A stretch of 64,000 bases of DNA from Octopus sinensis (Eukaryota): positions 148,924,001-148,988,000 of the forward strand of contig NC_043000.1 of assembly GCF_006345805.1 (NCBI RefSeq), read 5' to 3'. Below the pieces are notes generated by a model. The model was not told where the DNA came from, searched no databases, and was given only the letters and a program-made list of their open reading frames with translations. Shown here piece after piece: positions 3,316 to 54,701 of the stretch; the stretch's first letter is position 1, and every line of letters begins with the position of its first letter. The position numbers were made by a program, and so were the translations under genes.

Positions 3316-3829
3316 AATTACTAAGATCAAGAGAAACAAGAACACCAAAAAATGTGTGGTGCTACTACTCTGTCCTTCCACTGGTACCATCTGTTGGTTA
3401 ATGATCTTGTTAGAACAGAATGGTGACATCGTGACTGGCTTGATGTCAGAAAGGTACAAAGTGTAACATATGTCACTCGAGTACCTAGAAGTAGAAAATA
3501 CTTTAAAATAGGTCACAGACGAGATTTTTTTATTTGCCTGTACTCCACTGAAGATAAAATTTCATGTTTACTATCATATCCAATAATTCCTGTTCCAATT
3601 TCAAGCATATTGATACAACTGATTTTGAATTTTGATACATCAATCCTGGCTTTCACGAAGGAGTCTTTTTTTTTTTAGGTAAATGGCATCAAAGATGAAC
3701 TCAGTAGATGAGTCTGACTACAACTCTATACCATGCAGAAGAAAAAGAAAATAATTTTGGATTATTTTTCGAGGGTGTCACAATCTCAGTGTCACCATAG
3801 TCAGTTGCAGAGTCTGAGTGTGATTTATC

Positions 3830-4365
3830 AGGAGCTGCCAGCGCCACCCCGACTGGCTTCGTGCCGGTGGCACGTAAAAAGCACCGTCCGTTCGTGGCCG
3901 TTGCCAGCCTTGCCTGGCCCCAGTGCCGGTGGCACGTAAAAAGCACCGTCCGTTCGTGGCCGTTGCCAGCCTCGCCTGGCCCCAGTGCCGGTGGCACATA
4001 AAAAGCACCATCCGTTCGTGGCCGTTGCCAGCCTCGCCTGGCCCCAGTGCCGGTGGCACATAAAAAGCACCATCCGTTCGTGGCCGTTGCCAGCCTCGCC
4101 TGGCCCCAGTGCCGGTGGCACATAAAAAACACCATCCAAGCGTGGCCGTTCGCCAGCCTCGTCTGGCACCTGTGTCGGTGGCACGTAAAAAGCACCCACT
4201 ACACTCATGGAGTGGTTGGCGTTAGGAAGGGCATCCAGCCGTAGAAACATTGCCAGATCAAACTGGGCCTGGTGCAGCCTTCTGGCTTCCCAGACCCCAG
4301 TTGAACTGTCCAACCCATGCCAGCATGGAAAGCGGATGCTAAATGATGATGATGATGATGATGAA
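3830..4365 (+). mobile_element. RTE 3'UTR tail with expanded 62-bp minisatellite
   Basis: Ends ...aacccatgccagcatggaaagcggatgctaaa(tga)n, as in the LINE end at 54400-54701. Units start at 3861, 3923, 3985, 4047, 4109 and about 4172. Confidence 0.9.
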
Positions 4366-4399
4366 TAACAAGTGTAAATAGAAATGAACCAGATGAAAT

Positions 4400-5600
4400 T
4401 AGTCATAAACATCCACCAGGTGGTATTCCTGTGTGAATCATAAAGTATGATACATCTGTTAAAGTGAAATATCAGAAGATATTCCTGCCAGTCACAAAGA
4501 AAGTATTTCAGAAACACGATTGTGAAATTTCAGAAGTAGACTGTGAAATGACAATACTGGAGTTCTTAAGGCATGAAAATTATCCCCACTGGCTGTCTAC
4601 CCATATACACAGATGAGTGAACCAAATATTAAAAAGTTGTTGAAAATCTCATCCAGAGCGATGTTAATCAAAGATGCTTGAAAATTTCTTCAAGAAAAGA
4701 AACTGAAAAGGCATCTGAAGTTCAATGGGTGTGTATAGTAAGCAATTAAATAGTGCAAACAAACAACTTTGTGACAAAATTTGTGGACCAATGATGCCAA
4801 ATCACATTTGTGACAAACAACTGGCCATCCAACTGTAATAAGCCATTTACTCCATATAATACAATTGATTTTTGAACTTCAATACATTAATCCTGTCCTT
4901 CACAATGAATTCTTAAGAGCTATTATCCAAACTGATCTATACTGATTTTTACAGCAAATCTCTTCTATTCAAGCTACCTCCTTCAAATATAATGATTCAG
5001 CTGAGAAAATACCCAGGTTCTAAAGCTGAAAATTATAGTCAGTTATAGTAAAGAAGGAAATTTGATTAGGAATTGGTGAAATAATTGAATCTAGTGCAGC
5101 AGGGCATGAACAAACATTTTTCAGAGGCACGAGCAGTTTATGCAGTTCAATAATGGTCAGTAAAGCATAAATCATTTAACAACAAGTGGAGACATTAAAA
5201 ACACAGGAAGATACATTGGTATGTGTGCAAAGATGGATTGCCTGAAGGAAGAGCTTGGTGTTAAGCATCTTAGGTTGAAATCAGTATATGCAACACATAA
5301 CTGAGCAGCTGTAGTAAAGGACATTGTCAACTCAGTTGCAAAAATTCAAAATATTGTAAACTGCTGGTAGAATTGCTATATTTTTTTCCCACAAGTCACA
5401 ACGACAAACTTCAGAACAAATACAAACTTAATAACTCAGAAAAGGGTTACAAACTAAAATAGTTTACAAAACATTTAACGCCTTTGCTTGACCTGTGTAT
5501 CAGAAGTGATACACAAGACATTTCGCTGGCGTTGATGCATCGTATATGATATATAATCTCAATTTTTTTCACCCACCAGAGTAACAGGGGACTTATGAAA
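4400..5600 (+). mobile_element. Probable decayed hAT transposase remnant
   Basis: Short motifs YINPVLHNEFLRA (4883) and ELGVKHLRLKSVYATH (5251) resemble hAT DUF4371 and LK....TRW motifs. Many stops; boundaries uncertain. Confidence 0.35.
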
Positions 5601-7010: not shown

Positions 7011-7588
7011 CTCTTTACTCTTTTACTTGTTTCAGTCATTTGACTGCGGCCATGCTGGAGCACCGCCTTTAGTCGAGCAAATCGACCCCGAGACTTATTC
7101 TATCGGTCTCTTTTGCCGAACTGCTAAGTGACGGGGATGTAAACACACCAGCATCGATTGTCAAACAATGCTAGGGGGACAAACACAGACACACAAACAT
7201 ATACACACTTATATATATATATATATATATATACATATATACGACAGGCTTCTTTCAGTTTCCGTCTACCAAATCCACTCACAAGGCATTGGTCGGCCCG
7301 GGGCTATAGCAGAAGACACTTGCCCAAGATGCCACGCAGTGGGACTGAACCCGGAACCATGTGGTTGGTTAGCAAGCTACTTACCACACAGCCACTCCTG
7401 CGCCTATATATATATATACATATATACGACAGGCTTCTTTCAGTTTCCGTCTACCAAATCCACTCACAAGGCATTGGTCGGCCCGGGGCTATAGCAGAAG
7501 ACACTTGCCAAGATGCCACGCAGTGGGACTGAACCCGGAACCATGTGGTTGGTAAGCAAGCTACTTACCACACAGCCACTCCTGCGCC
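7011..7588 (-). mobile_element. SINE family A with duplicated head, 5-bp TSD
   Basis: Reverse orientation, two tandem copies of the about 180-bp head, TSD tataa (7006-7010, 7589-7593). Confidence 0.92.
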
Positions 7589-8647: not shown

Positions 8648-8900
8648 CTACATCGCCTGGCCCCCGTGCCGGTGACACGTAAAAGCACCATCCGTTCGTG
8701 GCCGTTCGCCAGCTCTGTCTGGCACCTGTGCAGGTGGCACGTAAAAAACACCAACTACACTCACAGAGTGGTTGGCGTTAGGAAGGGCATCCAGCCGTAG
8801 AAACACTGCCAGATCTGACTGGGCCTGGCGCAGCCTTCCAGCTTCACAGACCCCAGTTGACCCGTCCAACCCATGCTAGCATGGAAAGCGAACGCTAAAC

Positions 8901-15371: not shown

Positions 15372-16556
15372 ATGTTTACATATAAATACATCAATGTATG
15401 CATATGATATATACACATACACACATATCGTTGCAAGCCAGATTATATGGTTATGAAGTTTGCTTCTCAACCATATGGTCTTAAGTTCAATCCCACTTTC
15501 TGGTAATTTGGGCAAGTATCTCTACTACAGCCTTAGGCCAACCAAAGTGGTTCTGGTTGACAGAAACTGAAACAACTCCATTTTCTTTCTGTCTGTTTGT
15601 CTTTCCCATTGTATCTATGTGTGTGTGTGTTCTGTACCACCTTGCTTGGACATCACCTGATAACTGAAAATGATTGTCACTAGAGACATTAAAAGATGAT
15701 GATGACGATGATGATACAAGCAATGTCATTCAGTACTAATATTCTGCGAGAATATGTGTGGCCAAAGGAGAAATATTACCTTGCTTGGAAACAGGTGAGA
15801 GCTGGCAATGGAAAGGGCATCTGGCTATAACAAATCTGCCTCAATAAAGTCTGTCTAATCCATGCAAGCAAGGAAAAGTGGACATTATGATGACGACATA
15901 CAGTATGTGTGCATGTGTGTATGTACATTTGTGCATATTTGAGTGTGTCTCTGAGTGTATTTTATTGGGTCAACCAGAATCAGAGTTCATCTACACTGTG
16001 TTTGCAAGCTTAATGATTGAGACAGAAATTTTGAAGTTTGTGAAACCCAGAATACTGATTCCAGTTGGCCTAATAAATTACACTGTACTTTAGGTAGAGA
16101 GTACTCTTCTTTACTACTACTAACCTTAATGATTAGGTATCTATGCACATACGCACATGCACACACACATATGAACTTCTACATAATTTCCATCTACACA
16201 GGCCAATCCAAGTCTATGTTACATTTTCCCAAAATGCTGTGCAGTGTGGTTGAACTAGGAACCACATGATTATGAAACAAACTTTTTAACCACACAGTCA
16301 TGCCTGCATCCATTTTAATGAGGAAAAAATTAAGAGACAGATGAAGTGTTTTGAGAACAACCGAAAATACATATAAGAATGGCTGGATGGAATTAGATAT
16401 TAATGCAAAGTTGAACGTGTAAAAAAAAAAACAAAAAACAAACATACTTTTAAATTATATAATTAAATAACATTTCAAAAAGTAAAATTACTTTTTTGTG
16501 GTTTAAATATAAAAATAATAAATAAAGCAAATTTACATAGGAATGTACAATTGTTG

Positions 16557-16730
16557 TCAAGAAGTTTTGTTGGCATGAATATCATTGCTGGCAAGTTTAG
16601 AAAGTTTGCTACATGCAAGAGCATAAGCTTTGCAGCTGCAATGACATATCATCGCAACAAAAGCTATCACTATAATTAATACAAATACTGATGCAACAAA
16701 GCTTAATTGGTATATCTGAGGGACAGACAT
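16557..16730 (-). CDS. Candidate 57-aa single-pass membrane microprotein downstream of C15orf61
   Basis: MSVPQIYQLSFVASVFVLIIVIAFVAMICHCSCKAYALACSKLSKLASNDIHANKTS*. It has an about 19-residue hydrophobic stretch, a juxtamembrane CHCSC and downstream lysines. ATG has G at -3 and is preceded by a T13 tract and acceptor (AG at 16741-16740). No homologue recognised. Confidence 0.4.
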   Translation of the reverse strand: MSVPQIYQLSFVASVFVLIIVIAFVAMICHCSCKAYALACSKLSKLASNDIHANKTS

Positions 16731-16860
16731 TTCTCTAGCCTAACATATATAAAAAAAAAAAAAGAGTCCTTTAGGTTATATTGAAATAAACAGCATCCGT
16801 ATGGCAATCCCAAATGAGAAGGATTTTGTTGGATTGGTTTATAAAAAGTAAATGGTTATT

Positions 16861-16988
16861 TCAGTACTGTGAATTTTTTTCTTCTTTATTCAGGAAGTAT
16901 ATTCGAACGGTGCCTTTTGTAGTTTCTACATCTTCATGATATCTGACCAACATCCAGCAAGCAATGCCATATGCCAATGTAGGAACAC
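16861..16988 (-). CDS. C15orf61: C15orf61 homologue, last coding exon
   Basis: Acceptor ttttatttttaaaccatag|GT, phase 1, in frame with the previous exon. Encodes (G)VPTLAYGIACWMLVRYHEDVETTKGTVRIYFLNKEEKNSQY*, aligning with the human C-terminus [42 protein letters not shown] as recalled. Total protein 147 aa. Confidence 0.95.
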
Positions 16989-17125
16989 CTATGGTTTAAA
17001 AATAAAATTAAAAAAATATTTAGACATTGAATCATTGTAACAAAAACTTGAAGATATATGTACACTCAAGCACTCAATGGCATTGATGTGTTATTGAGGG
17101 TTCTATTAAGTCAAGTACATCAACA

Positions 17126-17390
17126 TCAAAAAATCAAATGGAAATTGTAGTTGCGATACCTGTGCCGTTGGCACGTAAAAAGCACCATCCTAATGTGGCC
17201 GATGCCAGTGCCGCCTTGACTGGCTTCCGTGCCGGTGGTACGTAAAAAGCACCAACCAATCGTGGCCGTTGCCAGCCTCACCTGGCACCTAAGCCGGTGG
17301 CACGTAAAAAGCACCCACTACACTCACGGAATGGTTGGCGTTAGGAAGGGCATCCAGCTGTAGAAACACTGCCAGATCAGACTGGAGAAG
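17126..17390 (+). mobile_element. RTE 3'UTR fragment (C15orf61 intron 2)
   Basis: Same 3'UTR sequence with three GTGCC..GGCAC modules; 3' end truncated. Confidence 0.85.
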
Positions 17391-20261: not shown

Positions 20262-20590
20262 TTTTCATGTGCTACTGGCACGTGAACAAAACATTCGAGC
20301 GAGGTCGTTGACAGTGCCGCTGGACTGTCTCCTGTGCAGGTGGCACGTAAAAAACACCATTTCGAGCATGGCCGTTGCCAGTACCGCCAGACTGGCCCTC
20401 GTGCAGGTGGCACGTAAAAGCATCCACTACACTCTCGGAGTGGTTGGCATTAGGAAGGGCATTCAGCTGTAGAAACTCTGCCAGATCAAGATTGGAGCTT
20501 GGCGCAGCCATCTGGTTCGCCAGTCCTCAGTCAAATCGTCCAACCCATGCTAGCATGGAAAGTGGACGTTAAATGATGATGATGATGATG
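20262..20590 (+). mobile_element. RTE 3'UTR tail
   Basis: Same family; (gat)n tail at about 20574-20590. Confidence 0.85.
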
Positions 20591-21585: not shown

Positions 21586-22350
<765 letters not shown>

Positions 22351-23399
22351 TTAAATAAAACCAAATATTTCCTCACTATAACAGAGAAATAAAGAAATTT
22401 TACCTTAAAATGTTATCTTTTACATATTCATGAAACAACTTTTAACAAATTTTAATTTCATGACAAAAAACAAAAATAAATTTCTAAAACTTTTAATCTC
22501 ACCCTCATTTATGAATTTATAAATTTAATGATGCTGCAGTAAATATTATATGCAGTATTCGTTTCCACTAAGTCTTACCATGCTTTTGGCGGGGAACCTG
22601 AATCACAACTATGTATGCAATCGATTGGACCGCATGGGTATTTGACACTCATGAGGGTCTAATAAATTGTATCAAAGACAAATGCCGCTGATGATTTATA
22701 GATAAATATGTGAGTATAATTGCATATTATATTAATAAAGAAACAATTGTTCAGCATTAATCTATCTTTTCGTTGTATTTCACTTTCCTTACGTTGAGGG
22801 TAATGTTATTTCTTGGTGGGAACAACTTTGGTGGCTATACCAGAAAAAGGAGCTATTTTTAGCACTAGAGTTAACCACTTATATTTAAGTATAAATTTGT
22901 ATTGTCTCCCTGGTTTTTTATGTGCTAAGCCACTTGGTGTTAAACTGATGGTATTATTAAATTAATATCTAATTTTTCACCCTCATTTATGAATCAATAA
23001 ATAAAGAGGTAAAAGTAAGTTCCCCTGTTGTTTTATATAAATCCTATTTATTATTTTCAAGGTATTCACCCGAGATCTAAGTTAACAAGTTAGTTACACT
23101 CACCCTTAAATTAGTAATCAAAATATTATTTCTTGAAATACTATCCAGAGTAAAGATTATATTTTTATTTGTTTGCTTAAAGAGAAAGGATTACACCACA
23201 CCTATAGCTAAACCAAGCAGTTAGTGTTTAATTTCTATTGTTGTACATTAGAAATTGGAGTGAACATAAAAGCAAGGAGGAATTTTCAGATGGATGCAAT
23301 TCTGTGAAGCTGAAAGTCAGAGCAATTAGGAGAATTATTGGCTGAGTCAGGAAAGTTGTCTTTCATAGAGATGAAGCTTACATTATAGCTTTTCAACAA

Positions 23400-23628
23400 G
23401 GAGGAAAGGCCGAAGCCAGTGCCGCCTTGACTGGCTTCCGTGCAGGTGGCACGTAAAAAGCACCCACTACACTCACGGAGTGGTTGGCGTTAGGAAGGGC
23501 ATCCAGCCGTAGAAACACTGCCAGATAAGACTGGAGCCTGGTGCAGCCTCTTGGCTTCCCAGACCCCGGTCGAACTGTCCAACCCATGCTAGCATGGAGA
23601 ACGGACGTTAAATGATGATGATGATGAG
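23400..23628 (+). mobile_element. RTE 3'UTR tail
   Basis: Same family, single module, (tga)n tail. Confidence 0.85.
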
Positions 23629-46780: not shown

Positions 46781-47680
46781 AGGCATTTAAAAACTAATTT
46801 GTATTTGGATTTAAGACTATCATGATTCATAGGGGATTGTGTATTGCTCTTATTTAGTTTCCTGGAACTTTTCATTGCTGCCCTTTACAGGTTCAATATC
46901 CTCAGACCAGCTAGCATCCCTTTCTTGTGCCTTGACAAATTTCTGTGTCTGTTTATTATTGCATAAGCTAAAGCTCACATGTGCTGCTGTGTTATGATTG
47001 AAGGATGCTATAATATTAACTTCAAGCTTATGTAACAGATGTATGTCACTGATATACGCAATGAATTCTGCAGTTGCTAGTATTAATAATAGATTAAGTA
47101 AACTTTGTGGAACAGTGTGATATGCACCAAGTGAATCAAGAGAAGAAATAAGTTATTTCTTAAAGATTTTATTTTTCTGTCAATTTGTTATTAGGAACAG
47201 TATACTGTTTCACAGTGGTAGAGGGGTGCTAGTATTGACATGATTTGCACACTTGGTAGTATTTGTGTCAGCTGTAGATGTTAGAAAGATAAAGGTGTAC
47301 TAGAGAGAGAAATGTGTAGCATCTAAAAGCAAAAACAAACTGTCTTAGAATATTTGGAGTAGGCATCCTCCCCACACAAGGTGTCAGGTGAGAAATGGAG
47401 GCATATTTCCTCCAGTGAATGCTGGATACCAAGAGCAAGGTGCTCTTTCAGTGTGGTGCCAGATGAAAGAGGAAGAATTTTATTTGGTATTCTATATTAA
47501 TAAATGTTGAAAGTTGGATGCAAGTCTATATCAATACATGTTGAAAGTTGGAAGGTAAATAGAAAGATTAAGAACTGTGTTGTTGCACAATGAAAGGCCA
47601 CACTTGAAGTGAGAAAGAGAGATACTCTCTGACCAGCAGCCAAGGGACCAAAGAGAAAGAACTGACTTTTGGTTGCATAT

Positions 47681-48096
47681 AGGCGCAGGAGTGGCTGTGT
47701 GGTAAGTAGCTTGCTAACCAACCACATGGTTCCGGGTTCAGTCCCACTGCATGGCATCTTGGGCAAGTGTCTTCTGCTATAGCCTCGGGCCAACCAAAGC
47801 CTTATGAGTGGATTTGGTAGACGGAAACTGAAAGAAGCCTGTCGTATATATGTATATATATATATATGTATGTGTATGTATGTGTGTTTGTGTGTCTGTG
47901 TTTGTCCCCCTAGCATTGCTTGACATCCGATGCTGGTGTGTTTACATCCCCGTCACTTAGCGGTTCGGCAAAAGAGACCGATAGAATAAGTACTGGGCTT
48001 ACAAAGAATAAGTCCTGGGGTTGATTTGCTCAACTAAAGGCGGTGCTCCAGCATGGCTGCAGTCAAACGACTGAAACAAATAAAAGAGTAAAGAGT
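47681..48096 (+). mobile_element. SINE family A
   Basis: Full-length match. Confidence 0.92.
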
Positions 48097-51789: not shown

Positions 51790-54701
51790 GAATAATGTTA
51801 TGGACACTAAATATTTAACTTGTAGCCTTGTAATCTGGAACACTAACTTCAAGAAGCCAAATAGCCACCTGATAACCTACCAATCAAGTGACTCTGCTAG
51901 CCAGATTGATTTCATCCTCACCAGACAGTGGGATGCAGGGTTGCTCTTAAATACAAAGACCCTCTTGGGTGAAGAATGTACCCCCCCCAACATAGACTAG
52001 TGATTAGTGACTTTAGACTTGAGGCCAGAAGGATGCCAAGAAGCAGACCAATTCAGAAAAGAAGGATTTGGAAACTAAAGAACATTTCACATGGTCAGAG
52101 ATTTAGGGACATCCTCATCAAGAAATTTGATGAGAGGGAGGAGGAGCTACAGACCTCAGACGTAGAGGGTAGCTGGAAATTCCTATGGGACAGCTTGCTG
52201 AGTGCCACAGACCAAGTCTGCAGATAGTGCAAAGTCTCTTCCAGACATAGGGTAATGTGGTAGTGGAATAATATGGTAGACAAAGCCATTAGAGCAAAGA
52301 AACAGGCCTGGAAAGCCTGGAAGAGTTGAGGTAGCAGGGAACTGTACCAGATAGCCAGAAGGGAGGCTAGGCTGGGCGACAGGTATACATAGCTAAAGGA
52401 GAAGCAGAAAAGAAGTTTGTCAATGTCCAGCAACGTGAGGACCAAAGAACTGAAGTATTTCAGATTGCAAGACAGTGTGTGAGAGAAAATTGTGTTGTCA
52501 CAGGAGAGAAATGTGTCCACATGGATGATGGTGCACTTGCTTTTAATGATTCGGAAAAGAAAGAGGCTTGGAGAAGCCATTATGAAAGATTGCTGAACTT
52601 GGAGAATGAGAGCCTGTCAAATGTTGACCCAGTAGAGGGACCAGCTATCTGAATAGAGAGTACCCTGGTAGATAAAGCAATTAAGGGTATGAAGCCAGGA
52701 AAAGCCCCCGGCCCATCAGGAATCAGTGCTGAGATGCTTAAAGCATCTGGTGGGTTGGGCTATGGCCTAGTCACCCGCATTGTAAACCAGGTAGTTCATG
52801 ATGGAGTCATACCCAATGACTGGTGTAGCAGTACCATAGTCAACTGCTACAAGGGTAAAGGTGATGTTTTAGACAGAAATAACTACAGGGGTATTAAACT
52901 GCTGGTTCAAGTGATGAAGGTCATAGAGAGAGTATTAGCCCAACTAATTAGGGAGAGAGTCTGCTTGGGTGAGATGCAGTTCAGTTTTGTACCAGGTAGA
53001 AGCACCACTGATGCTATATTCCTGATATGGCAACTGCAGGAGAAATACCTAGCCAACGATAAACCCCTATACCTGGCTTTTGTGGACTTGGAGAAAGCCT
53101 TTGACAAGGTCCCTTGATCCCTTATCTGGTGGGCGATGCAGAAACTGGGGATTGATGAATGGTTAATAAGGGCTGTATAGGCCCTATACAGAGATGCTGT
53201 TAGTAAAGTTAGGGTTGGCAATGAGTATAGTGAAGAATTCTGGGTAGAAGTAGGGGTCCACCAAGGATCAGACCTCAGCCCCCTCTTATTCATTATAGTC
53301 CTCCAGGCAATAACAGAGGAATTTAAGACAGGTTGCCCCAGGGAGTTCCTCTATGCTGATGACCTGGCCCTCATAGCAGAATCACTTCCAGAACTAGAGA
53401 AGAAATTTCAGGTGTGAAAGCAAGGTTTAAAGTCGAAGGGCCTTAGAGTTAATGTTGTAAAAACCAAAGTTCTAGTAAGTAGGAAGGCGAACACATCACA
53501 CACCCTTTGAGGTAGGTGGCTCTGCTTTCTCTGTAGAAAAGGTGTAGGTAGAAACTCCATAAAATGTACCCCGTGTAAGCTATGGATGCATAAGAGGTGC
53601 AGCAATATCAAAGGAAGATTAACCAGGAAGATAGCTTTCGTGTGCAGCAGATGCACAGGGGCAATAAACACTATAGATGCTCAGAAAACAGATGCCATCA
53701 CATGCTAGGGGGAGAAACTAAAAGTAGTTGATAGCGTGCACTCCCTAGGTGACCAAGTCCGTAGTGGGGGTGGATGCTCAGAGAGCATTATCACTAGAAT
53801 AAGAATTCCCTGGGCAAAGTTCAGACAGCTTCTATCCCTACTGGTGACAAAGGGCCTCTCGCTCAGAGTGAAAGGTAGATTGTACGATGCATGTGTGCGA
53901 ACTGCCATGCTTCATGGCAGTGAAACATAGGCCGTGACTGCTGAAAATATGCGTAGGCTTGAAAAAATGAAGCTAGTATGAGCTGCTGGATGTGTAATGT
54001 CAGTGTGCACACATGACAGAGTGTAAGCGCCCTGAGAGAAATGCTGGACGTAAGAAGCATCGGATGTGGTGTGCAAGAGAGGCGTTTGCGCTGGTATGGT
54101 CATGTACTGCGGATGGATGAGGAGAGCTGTGTGAAGTACCATTTCCAAACAGTGGAAGGAATCTGGGGTAGAAGGAGACCCAGGAAGGCATGGGATGAGG
54201 TGGTGAAGCATGACCTTCGAACATTGGGCCTCACAGAGACAATGACGAAAGACCAAGACTTCTGGAGATATGCTGTGATTGAGAAGACCTGGCAAATAAA
54301 ATGAGATCACAGCCGTAGCCTACCCCAGTGTTGCATAACCAGTCCACTCAAAAAGTACCTTTGGATCGTAGGGCGACATGCCGTGCTTGAGGAGACCTAT
54401 TGAGTCAAGTAAATGAAATGGAAATTGTAGTTGTGGTCCCTGTACCAGTGGCACGCAAAAAGTACCATCAGAATGTGGCATGTAAAAAGCACCATCCGAT
54501 CGTGGTCGATGCTAGCCCCCTCTGGCCCGTAAAAAGCACCCACTACATTCTCGGAGTGGTTGGCATTAGGAATGGCATCCAGCTGTAGAAGTACTGTCAG
54601 ATCAGACTGGAGCCTGGTGCAGCCTCCTGGCTTTCCAGACCCCAGTCGAACTGTCCAACTCATGCCAGCATGGAAAATGGACGTTAAACGATGATGATGA
54701 T
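51790..54701 (+). mobile_element. Decayed 5'-truncated RTE-clade LINE
   Basis: End of APE domain (SQIDFIL), RT motifs (KAPGPSG, KGKGD..NYRGIKL, GRSTTDAIF, AFVDLEKAFDKVP, GVHQGS, YADDL), an embedded Cys-rich zinc-finger segment, C-terminal RRLRWYGHV..GRRRPRKAW, then a 3'UTR ending in a (GAT)n tail. Multiple in-frame stops. Confidence 0.95.

Follow-up and report, generated by a model that had tools for sequence, protein, structure and literature searches.

The DNA directly behind C15orf61 in an Octopus genome raises the question of whether a short open reading frame (ORF) lying there encodes a protein and, if so, from which mRNA this protein would be made. A preliminary description of a 64-kb stretch of genomic DNA (hereafter named the window) had proposed an overlooked 57-aa ORF on the minus strand, 130 nt past the C15orf61 stop and behind a T13 tract and an AG. 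Our analysis confirmed this ORF, its translation and its position. It runs from ATG to TGA at 16557..16730 (−) (57 codons plus TGA; hereafter named the dORF, for downstream ORF), encodes MSVPQIYQLSFVASVFVLIIVIAFVAMICHCSCKAYALACSKLSKLASNDIHANKTS, and is separated from the C15orf61 stop by a spacer of exactly 130 nt. Both the T13 run (16763–16751) and the AG (16741–16740) are present 5′ of its ATG. In addition, an in-frame TAG (16742–16740) is located four codons upstream of the ATG, and thus the dORF cannot extend further 5′. The coordinates of the features are collected in the table below.

Features of the C15orf61–dORF locus, with window coordinates and the evidence for each
Feature	Position	Strand	Evidence
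dORF	16557..16730	−	ORF, dN/dS, codon-position differences, 13 transcript contigs
N-terminal motif, residues 2–10 (SVPQIYQLS)	16701..16727	−	alignment, tblastn, leave-out HMM searches
Predicted transmembrane helix, about residues 10–29 (SFVASVFVLIIVIAFVAMIC)	16644..16703	−	KD19 3.17; AlphaFold2
Juxtamembrane Cys cluster C29-H-C31-S-C33-K34 plus C40	16611..16646	−	alignment
C-terminal K-T-S	16560..16568	−	alignment
Intercistronic spacer, 130 nt	16731..16860	−	comparison with L001; counts of AUGs and poly(A) signals
C15orf61 last coding exon, 42 codons plus TGA	16861..16988	−	contiguous in the genome with spacer and dORF
C15orf61 first coding exon	22035..22350	−	start codon in weak context, T at −3
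ATTAAA hexamer, candidate 3′ end signal	16315..16320 (approximate, from offset)	−	first canonical poly(A)-type hexamer past the dORF

The length of the dORF is ordinary for this DNA, as the window contains 89 ATG-initiated ORFs of at least 57 aa, and length alone is insufficient to reject a chance ORF. Its Kyte–Doolittle 19-residue maximum (KD19) of 3.17 is the highest among the 122 ORFs of at least 50 aa in the window, with 2.64 for the runner-up. Since a single hydrophobicity outlier per window is no proof across a gigabase genome, the weight was placed on conservation. The dORF plus spacer is single-copy within the window, showing that the dORF is not part of the abundant surrounding repeats, and a repeat or transposon origin was thus ruled out. 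As for these other features of the window, a repeat of ~60 nt (unit GGTGCTTTTTACGTGCCACCGGC...) occurs as short tandem arrays at 17126–17340, within the intron of C15orf61, and at 3836–4221, 8657–8777, 20268–20448, 23408–23489 and 54411–54564, and yields long spurious ORFs (e.g. 3701–4517). A reverse-transcriptase-like ORF fragment at 52689–53117 (+) and two ORFs with near-identical translations on opposite strands, at 7158–7532 (+) and 47497–47916 (−), indicate dispersed retroelement or SINE copies.

The upstream gene is well defined at both exons. Exon 1 of C15orf61 ends with ...VINLG at a GT donor, exon 2 is preceded by a clean AG, and the spliced product of 147 aa matches Pfam PF15031 (DUF4528). 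This product shares 97% identity with the protein of Octopus bimaculoides, and an O. vulgaris entry matches its C-terminal 67 residues without a difference, indicating that the window belongs to an Octopus genome. A protein search anchored on exon 2 gave three matches, the contig of one of them (L009) being too short to inform. An AATAAA lies inside the C15orf61 coding exon itself (at about 16888–16893, ~25 nt 5′ of the stop, within ...CTGAATAAAGAAG...) and presumably plays no part in polyadenylation. The C15orf61 protein has been characterized very recently (2026 preprints). In human cells, it resides in the inner mitochondrial membrane, resists carbonate extraction, can be crosslinked to the c-ring of ATP synthase and limits the formation of dimers and oligomers (PMC12919160), and it has been described as a sub-stoichiometric (non-stoichiometric) regulator of ATP-synthase multimerization (bioRxiv 10.64898/2026.05.29.728872). 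The name ATP5MM has been proposed for this ATP-synthase regulator.

Searches with the dORF peptide in collections of 5.8 billion and 1.84 billion proteins returned a single entry, the unnamed gene call P0001, which is located on a Logan contig of 1 kb (L001) and is 98% identical to the dORF peptide. The expectation that standard annotation would miss the ORF therefore held in the databases searched. Because relatives of the peptide are not gene-called, the search strategy was switched to C15orf61 as an anchor and then to its 3′ flanks. L001 contains the end of the intron before exon 2 and is thus genomic, and it is 89% identical to window 16146–17105. The identity was 90% for the intron end (5 gap columns), 98% for C15orf61 exon 2 (no gap columns), 86% for the spacer (14 gap columns and 18 mismatches) and 94% for the dORF (no gap columns), and it was 90% both for the next 157 nt downstream (8 gap columns) and for a further 254 nt (4 gap columns). 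Within the dORF, 10 of the 174 nt differ, nine of them being third-position synonymous changes and one a Leu-to-Ile replacement (dN 0.007, dS 0.301), without any frameshift or stop. The resulting dN/dS is 0.025, far below the value of 1 against which the preliminary description had suggested to check it. The T13 run and the exact AG were not conserved in L001. It should be mentioned that the species of L001, and those of L002 and L010 below, are taken as cephalopods by similarity alone.

With the full C15orf61 protein as the anchor, Logan contigs encoding 76%-identical orthologues were recovered. Thirteen of these contigs (L002–5 and L010–18), from thirteen sequencing runs and two lineages, contain the complete 147-aa C15orf61 CDS, in which the two exons are joined, as well as an ORF of 57 codons located 185–186 nt 3′ of this CDS. 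Genomic contigs L006–8, in which the exon-1 protein sequence is identical to that of L010, read ...INFG and then enter the intron, showing that the 13 contigs represent spliced RNA. All 13 are collinear from the C15orf61 CDS via the spacer into the dORF. The dORF peptides of these two distant lineages are 65% and 77% identical to the octopus peptide at the amino acid level, with exactly 57 codons each. The differences from octopus at codon positions 1/2/3 were 13/5/43 (L002) and 12/4/39 (the other lineage), an excess at the third position with a P of about 1e-8 to 1e-9, where synonymous sites are saturated against octopus. Between L002 and L010, dN was 0.10 and dS 1.3, giving a dN/dS of about 0.08, again with no indels. 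The coding frame was the only frame open across all of the species compared. Furthermore, blastn of the octopus mRNA model against the transcripts aligned two islands, the C15orf61 CDS and the dORF, and did not align the spacer or the distal UTR.

The positions of the poly(A) signals agree with one shared transcript. Signals were found past the dORF stop at +181 nt in L002 and +363 in L010 (AATAAA in both, close to where the contigs end) and at +237 in the window (ATTAAA), and the L002 contig ends about 20 nt past its AATAAA. No AATAAA or ATTAAA was found in the window spacer, and there was no poly(A) signal between the cistrons in L010 or L020 (a transcript described below). Thus in two other cephalopod lineages both ORFs are carried by one mature spliced transcript with a poly(A) signal beyond the dORF, and in the octopus genome the last exon of C15orf61, the non-conserved spacer and the 57-codon ORF are contiguous. 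A block of ~28 nt right before the dORF AUG is conserved between L002 (790–817) and L010 (714–741), with the remaining spacer unalignable; this block could be a translation-control element.

Next, loci beyond the cephalopods were compared. The scan of metagenome contigs by C15orf61 alignment gave 80 loci, and exon 2 plus the downstream flank was readable at 60 loci, consisting of 58 of the 80 plus the Lottia gigantea genome (L019) and the transcript L020. An ORF of the transmembrane (TM) type was present within 700 nt downstream at five of the 60 (L019, L020, L055, L092 and L099), starting 9–158 nt past the stop. In Lottia, it is an unannotated ORF of 74 aa, 34 nt past the C15orf61 stop (MVPQTYELTFFSS...), with a very hydrophobic helix and an N-terminus (MVPQTYELTF) comparable with the octopus SVPQIYQLS. 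L020 carries a single-helix ORF of 69 aa at 158 nt. Among the metagenome loci, the dORF was found only in L055, L092 and L099, all starting with MASQ[SG][YL]QLSF, and the spacer is as short as 9 nt in L099 and 18 nt in L092. At the other 55 C15orf61 loci, neither an ORF of the TM type (within 700 nt) nor an HMM match in six-frame segments was found; these loci, the single vertebrate-like one sampled (L076) and 54 other non-mollusc-like ones, have C15orf61 and lack the dORF.

Of 9,725 six-frame segments, the window ORF scored best against an HMM built from the five non-cephalopod peptides (E 4.8e-4), and a cephalopod-only HMM ranked Lottia first (E 0.0095). When the Lottia peptide was used in phmmer, dORFs made up all of the first 14 non-self matches listed. 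The E-values are modest (5e-4 to 1e-2), and together with the position they support homology between the cephalopod and non-cephalopod dORF peptides. The ORF is thus conserved behind C15orf61 in the cephalopod lineages and in Lottia, and on this comparison the arrangement is at least as old as the limpet–cephalopod split. Two features of the metagenome loci are recorded here. The assembly JAAUYG01 contains two distinct C15orf61 copies (L055 and L099), each followed by a separate, diverged dORF of 80 aa or 103 aa, which would be either paralogues or copies from two host species. The L099 and L092 (JAAUXT01) peptides are alike in their long, acidic tail rich in Thr/Ser (DDEITDTTSD), which no other member has.

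Taken together, these comparisons suggest that the C15orf61 mRNA is very probably bicistronic, with the dORF as its conserved second cistron. Alignment extends over both coding regions but not over the spacer, and both the ORF length and the selection on it have been kept, pointing to a second cistron and not to an RNA-level UTR element. The preliminary description had left open a bicistronic mRNA or a separate interleaved gene, and the former is what the transcript contigs favour. The contrary reading, that the frame is untranslated and a chance ORF within a 3′UTR block conserved for RNA-level reasons, can draw on the fact that ORFs of this length are common in the window; it is nevertheless hardly credible, as nine of the ten substitutions against L001 are synonymous, the third-position excess is highly significant even with synonymous sites saturated, and length, start and stop have persisted between flanks that can no longer be aligned. 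The homologous ORF in Lottia and the purine at −3 of all nine dORF starts are also hard to reconcile with an untranslated frame. A chance ORF was thus ruled out by the codon-position and dN/dS tests.

It is less straightforward to see how the second cistron would be translated. In addition to the purine at −3, four of the nine dORF starts have G at +4. The C15orf61 start lies in the context atttaaATGA (window 22348–22356), and its T at −3, which two other cephalopod lineages have kept as well, would favour a degree of leaky scanning. Plain leaky scanning appears unlikely, because 6–7 AUGs inside the C15orf61 CDS and 1–2 in the spacer would intercept scanning ribosomes. Among the spacer AUGs, a mini-ORF of 5–6 codons (ATGCTG...) is seen in octopus (about 16795–16775), L001 (362–382) and L002 (667–684), and the spacer of the octopus lineage also has a 3-codon ORF just before the dORF (about 16746–16735). 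We infer that ribosomes would reach the second AUG by reinitiation after C15orf61 termination, or by internal entry. The very short spacers of L099, L092 and Lottia suggest coupling to termination, i.e. reinitiation, and the long pyrimidine-rich cephalopod spacers with their 28-nt block would also be compatible with internal entry or with an additional isoform.

The 6–7 upstream AUGs and the 147-codon first ORF make leaky scanning and efficient reinitiation both awkward, and a separate isoform may therefore be the real template. The protein would then be made mainly from an RNA that is spliced at a 3′ acceptor just 5′ of the ATG (the AG at 16741–16740 after T13) or that starts at an internal promoter. 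In each of the four cephalopod lineages, a pyrimidine-rich stretch and an AG lie no more than 12 nt from the ATG, and both the conservation of the 28-nt block before the AUG (L002 against L010) and the expected inefficiency of translation from the long mRNA with its many upstream AUGs would fit such an isoform. However, 13 of 13 transcript contigs are collinear through the spacer and no spliced variant was found among the contigs, which as short-read contigs sample isoforms poorly. Moreover, L001 has kept neither the T13 run nor that exact AG, and the spacers of 9–34 nt in L099, L092 and Lottia leave no room for an acceptor outside the C15orf61 CDS. We consider this explanation improbable, and a separate gene using the acceptor proposed in the preliminary description is unneeded. 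The second cistron of the C15orf61 mRNA thus remains the preferred reading, and the naturally varying spacers of 9 to 186 nt would make it a clean natural model for second-cistron translation after a long first ORF.

We then considered what the product may be. All nine peptides (57–103 aa) share the N-terminal motif [PS]-Q-x-[YL]-[QE]-L, a helix whose length does not vary and a Lys/Arg right after this helix, with a basic residue at position 34 common to all homologues. The Lys at −3 from the C-terminus is invariant (nine of nine) despite unalignable tails, and the ends read K-x-E in non-cephalopods and K-[TA]-S in cephalopods. The KD19 of the helix is 2.9–3.4 in the homologues. AlphaFold2, run with the nine-sequence alignment, gave one continuous helix over residues 5–56 with a mean pLDDT of 94 for residues 11–30. 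The dORF peptides have no N-terminal presequence. On these sequence features, the dORF product is a predicted microprotein with a single membrane helix, a short uncharged N-terminus and a net-positive tail ending K-x-[ES], and the claim of an overlooked single-pass membrane microprotein is well supported by the comparative evidence. From the basic residue after the helix and the net-positive tail, the positive-inside rule predicts an N-out orientation, with the N-terminus facing the lumen or intermembrane space and the tail the cytosol or matrix.

The preliminary description had also noted a Cys cluster followed by lysines. This part stands for the cephalopods, all four lineages of which have kept C29, C31, C33 and C40, and fails outside them, cysteines being absent or single in Lottia, L099, L092, L055 and L020. 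In cephalopods, the Cys residues thus lie at the end of the TM helix as in S-acylated single-pass proteins, on a side predicted to be cytosolic. A second Lys near the C-terminus occurs only in Lottia (KKGE, a full KKxx) and L092 (KTKEE, KxKxx). The octopus peptide does not belong to the dilysine (KKxx/KxKxx) ER-retrieval class, since its tail, NKTS, has no second Lys.

No relative of known family was detected. The octopus peptide matched no Pfam family at E up to 10, and Pfam searches with all nine peptides and a PDB profile search gave sub-threshold matches only (PsbM, HemY_N, DUF4834 and YMF19), which are attributable to TM composition. The octopus, other-cephalopod and Lottia peptides were not in a 15-billion-protein collection, which holds the L055-type and L020-type peptides as unnamed machine calls; altogether three database entries were found for the family, all of them machine-called and unnamed. 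A literature search found no paper tying C15orf61 to a bicistronic arrangement. The dORF would thus add a protein-coding gene that is listed in no genome annotation found in the databases searched, and a new microprotein family without relatives in Pfam or the PDB, with members in four cephalopod lineages, in Lottia and on four further contigs.

The preservation of the linkage from limpet to octopus suggests a shared function. Our working hypothesis is that the linkage has been kept because both products act in one membrane system, the microprotein being a small partner or modulator of C15orf61; we propose this tentatively, as possible rather than probable. Its most specific form, in which an ancient two-cistron gene is kept as a functional pair, with the microprotein a partner of ATP5MM in lophotrochozoans and made through coupled termination–reinitiation or internal entry, is doubtful. 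If true, the ATP-synthase regulator C15orf61 would have a small and so far undescribed partner in the membrane, produced by an unusual translation event after a 147-codon ORF.

On the other hand, the microprotein may be a secretory-pathway protein independent of C15orf61, inserted post-translationally into the ER, Golgi or plasma membrane in an N-lumenal/C-cytosolic orientation, with putative S-acylation on the cephalopod CHC[SG]C cluster and a C-terminal Lys used for sorting or retrieval. Such a protein would have the N-out/C-in, palmitoylated architecture named in the preliminary description. We regard this reading as a real possibility, somewhat short of an even chance. The helix is very hydrophobic in octopus and its homologues, and such KD19 values are much above expectation for a nuclear-encoded inner-membrane protein. 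The basic residue directly after the helix, the net-positive tail and the lack of a presequence are consistent with a secretory protein as well, as are the four conserved Cys residues next to the helix in cephalopods and the invariant Lys at −3 with its full dilysine forms in Lottia and L092. However, the Cys cluster is absent outside cephalopods, and S-acylation there would thus not be the ancestral function; the octopus tail lacks a dilysine motif, no known ER or plasma-membrane microprotein family was matched in Pfam or PDB, and linkage to a mitochondrial inner-membrane gene since the limpet–cephalopod split argues for a shared function. Mitochondrial and secretory-pathway localizations thus appear about equally likely. 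As a conserved membrane microprotein co-encoded with C15orf61, the dORF product is an obvious candidate interactor and a handle on C15orf61 biology outside vertebrates.

Among known single-helix proteins, ATP8/A6L (PF00895; YMF19, PF02326, in plants) resembles the dORF product in having about 55–70 aa, a P-Q ahead of one TM helix and a basic tail, and the genomic partner of the dORF, C15orf61, binds ATP synthase. The N-terminus of ATP8 carries an MPQ motif. Against M-P-Q-L of ATP8, octopus and Lottia have M-[S]-V-P-Q-x-Y-[QE]-L and L099, L092 and L055 have S-Q, a resemblance only. An identity with ATP8 is unsupported, as the dORF peptides gave no significant match to the profiles considered (PF00895, PF05933 and PF02326), the best being Lottia with 14.5 bits against PF02326 (cut-off 22.6), a score that does not stand out from those of other spurious matches, and no PDB ATP8 chain was matched at E up to 10. 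An atp8 gene is already present in cephalopod mtDNAs. Stannin and FXYD/phospholemman-type proteins have a single helix followed by a juxtamembrane Cys motif, and the likeness to the dORF product is in architecture only: a short extramembrane N-terminus, one helix, boundary Cys and a basic or amphipathic tail. In contrast, no member of the dORF family matched stannin (SNN) or FXYD (PF02038) in Pfam at E up to 10 or any such sequence in the PDB, and the Cys motif is cephalopod-specific within the dORF family. OST4 was absent from the match lists.

The closest parallel in gene organization is Sloth1/Sloth2 (orthologues of SMIM4 and C12orf73), two small mitochondrial peptides encoded by one bicistronic Drosophila transcript (PMC9681215). 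As there, one conserved animal mRNA carries two tandem ORFs, the second product is smaller than 100 aa in octopus, and C15orf61 is also a small inner-mitochondrial-membrane protein attached to an OXPHOS complex. Unlike in Sloth1/Sloth2, the upstream ORF here has 147 codons and the spacer is 9–186 nt; there is no sequence relationship, the mitochondrial place of the second product is putative, and the distribution seen covers molluscs plus further contigs. The dORF also resembles other microproteins of animal dORFs and alternative ORFs, as in multicistronic human genes (PMC5932603) and alt-RPL36 (PMC7820019), being a short ORF co-encoded with a canonical protein, located in what is annotated as 3′UTR and missed by length thresholds. 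It differs from them in being under strong purifying selection and positionally conserved from limpet to cephalopods. To our knowledge, most reported dORFs are poorly conserved, and few animal downstream ORFs pair strong purifying selection with positional conservation this deep.
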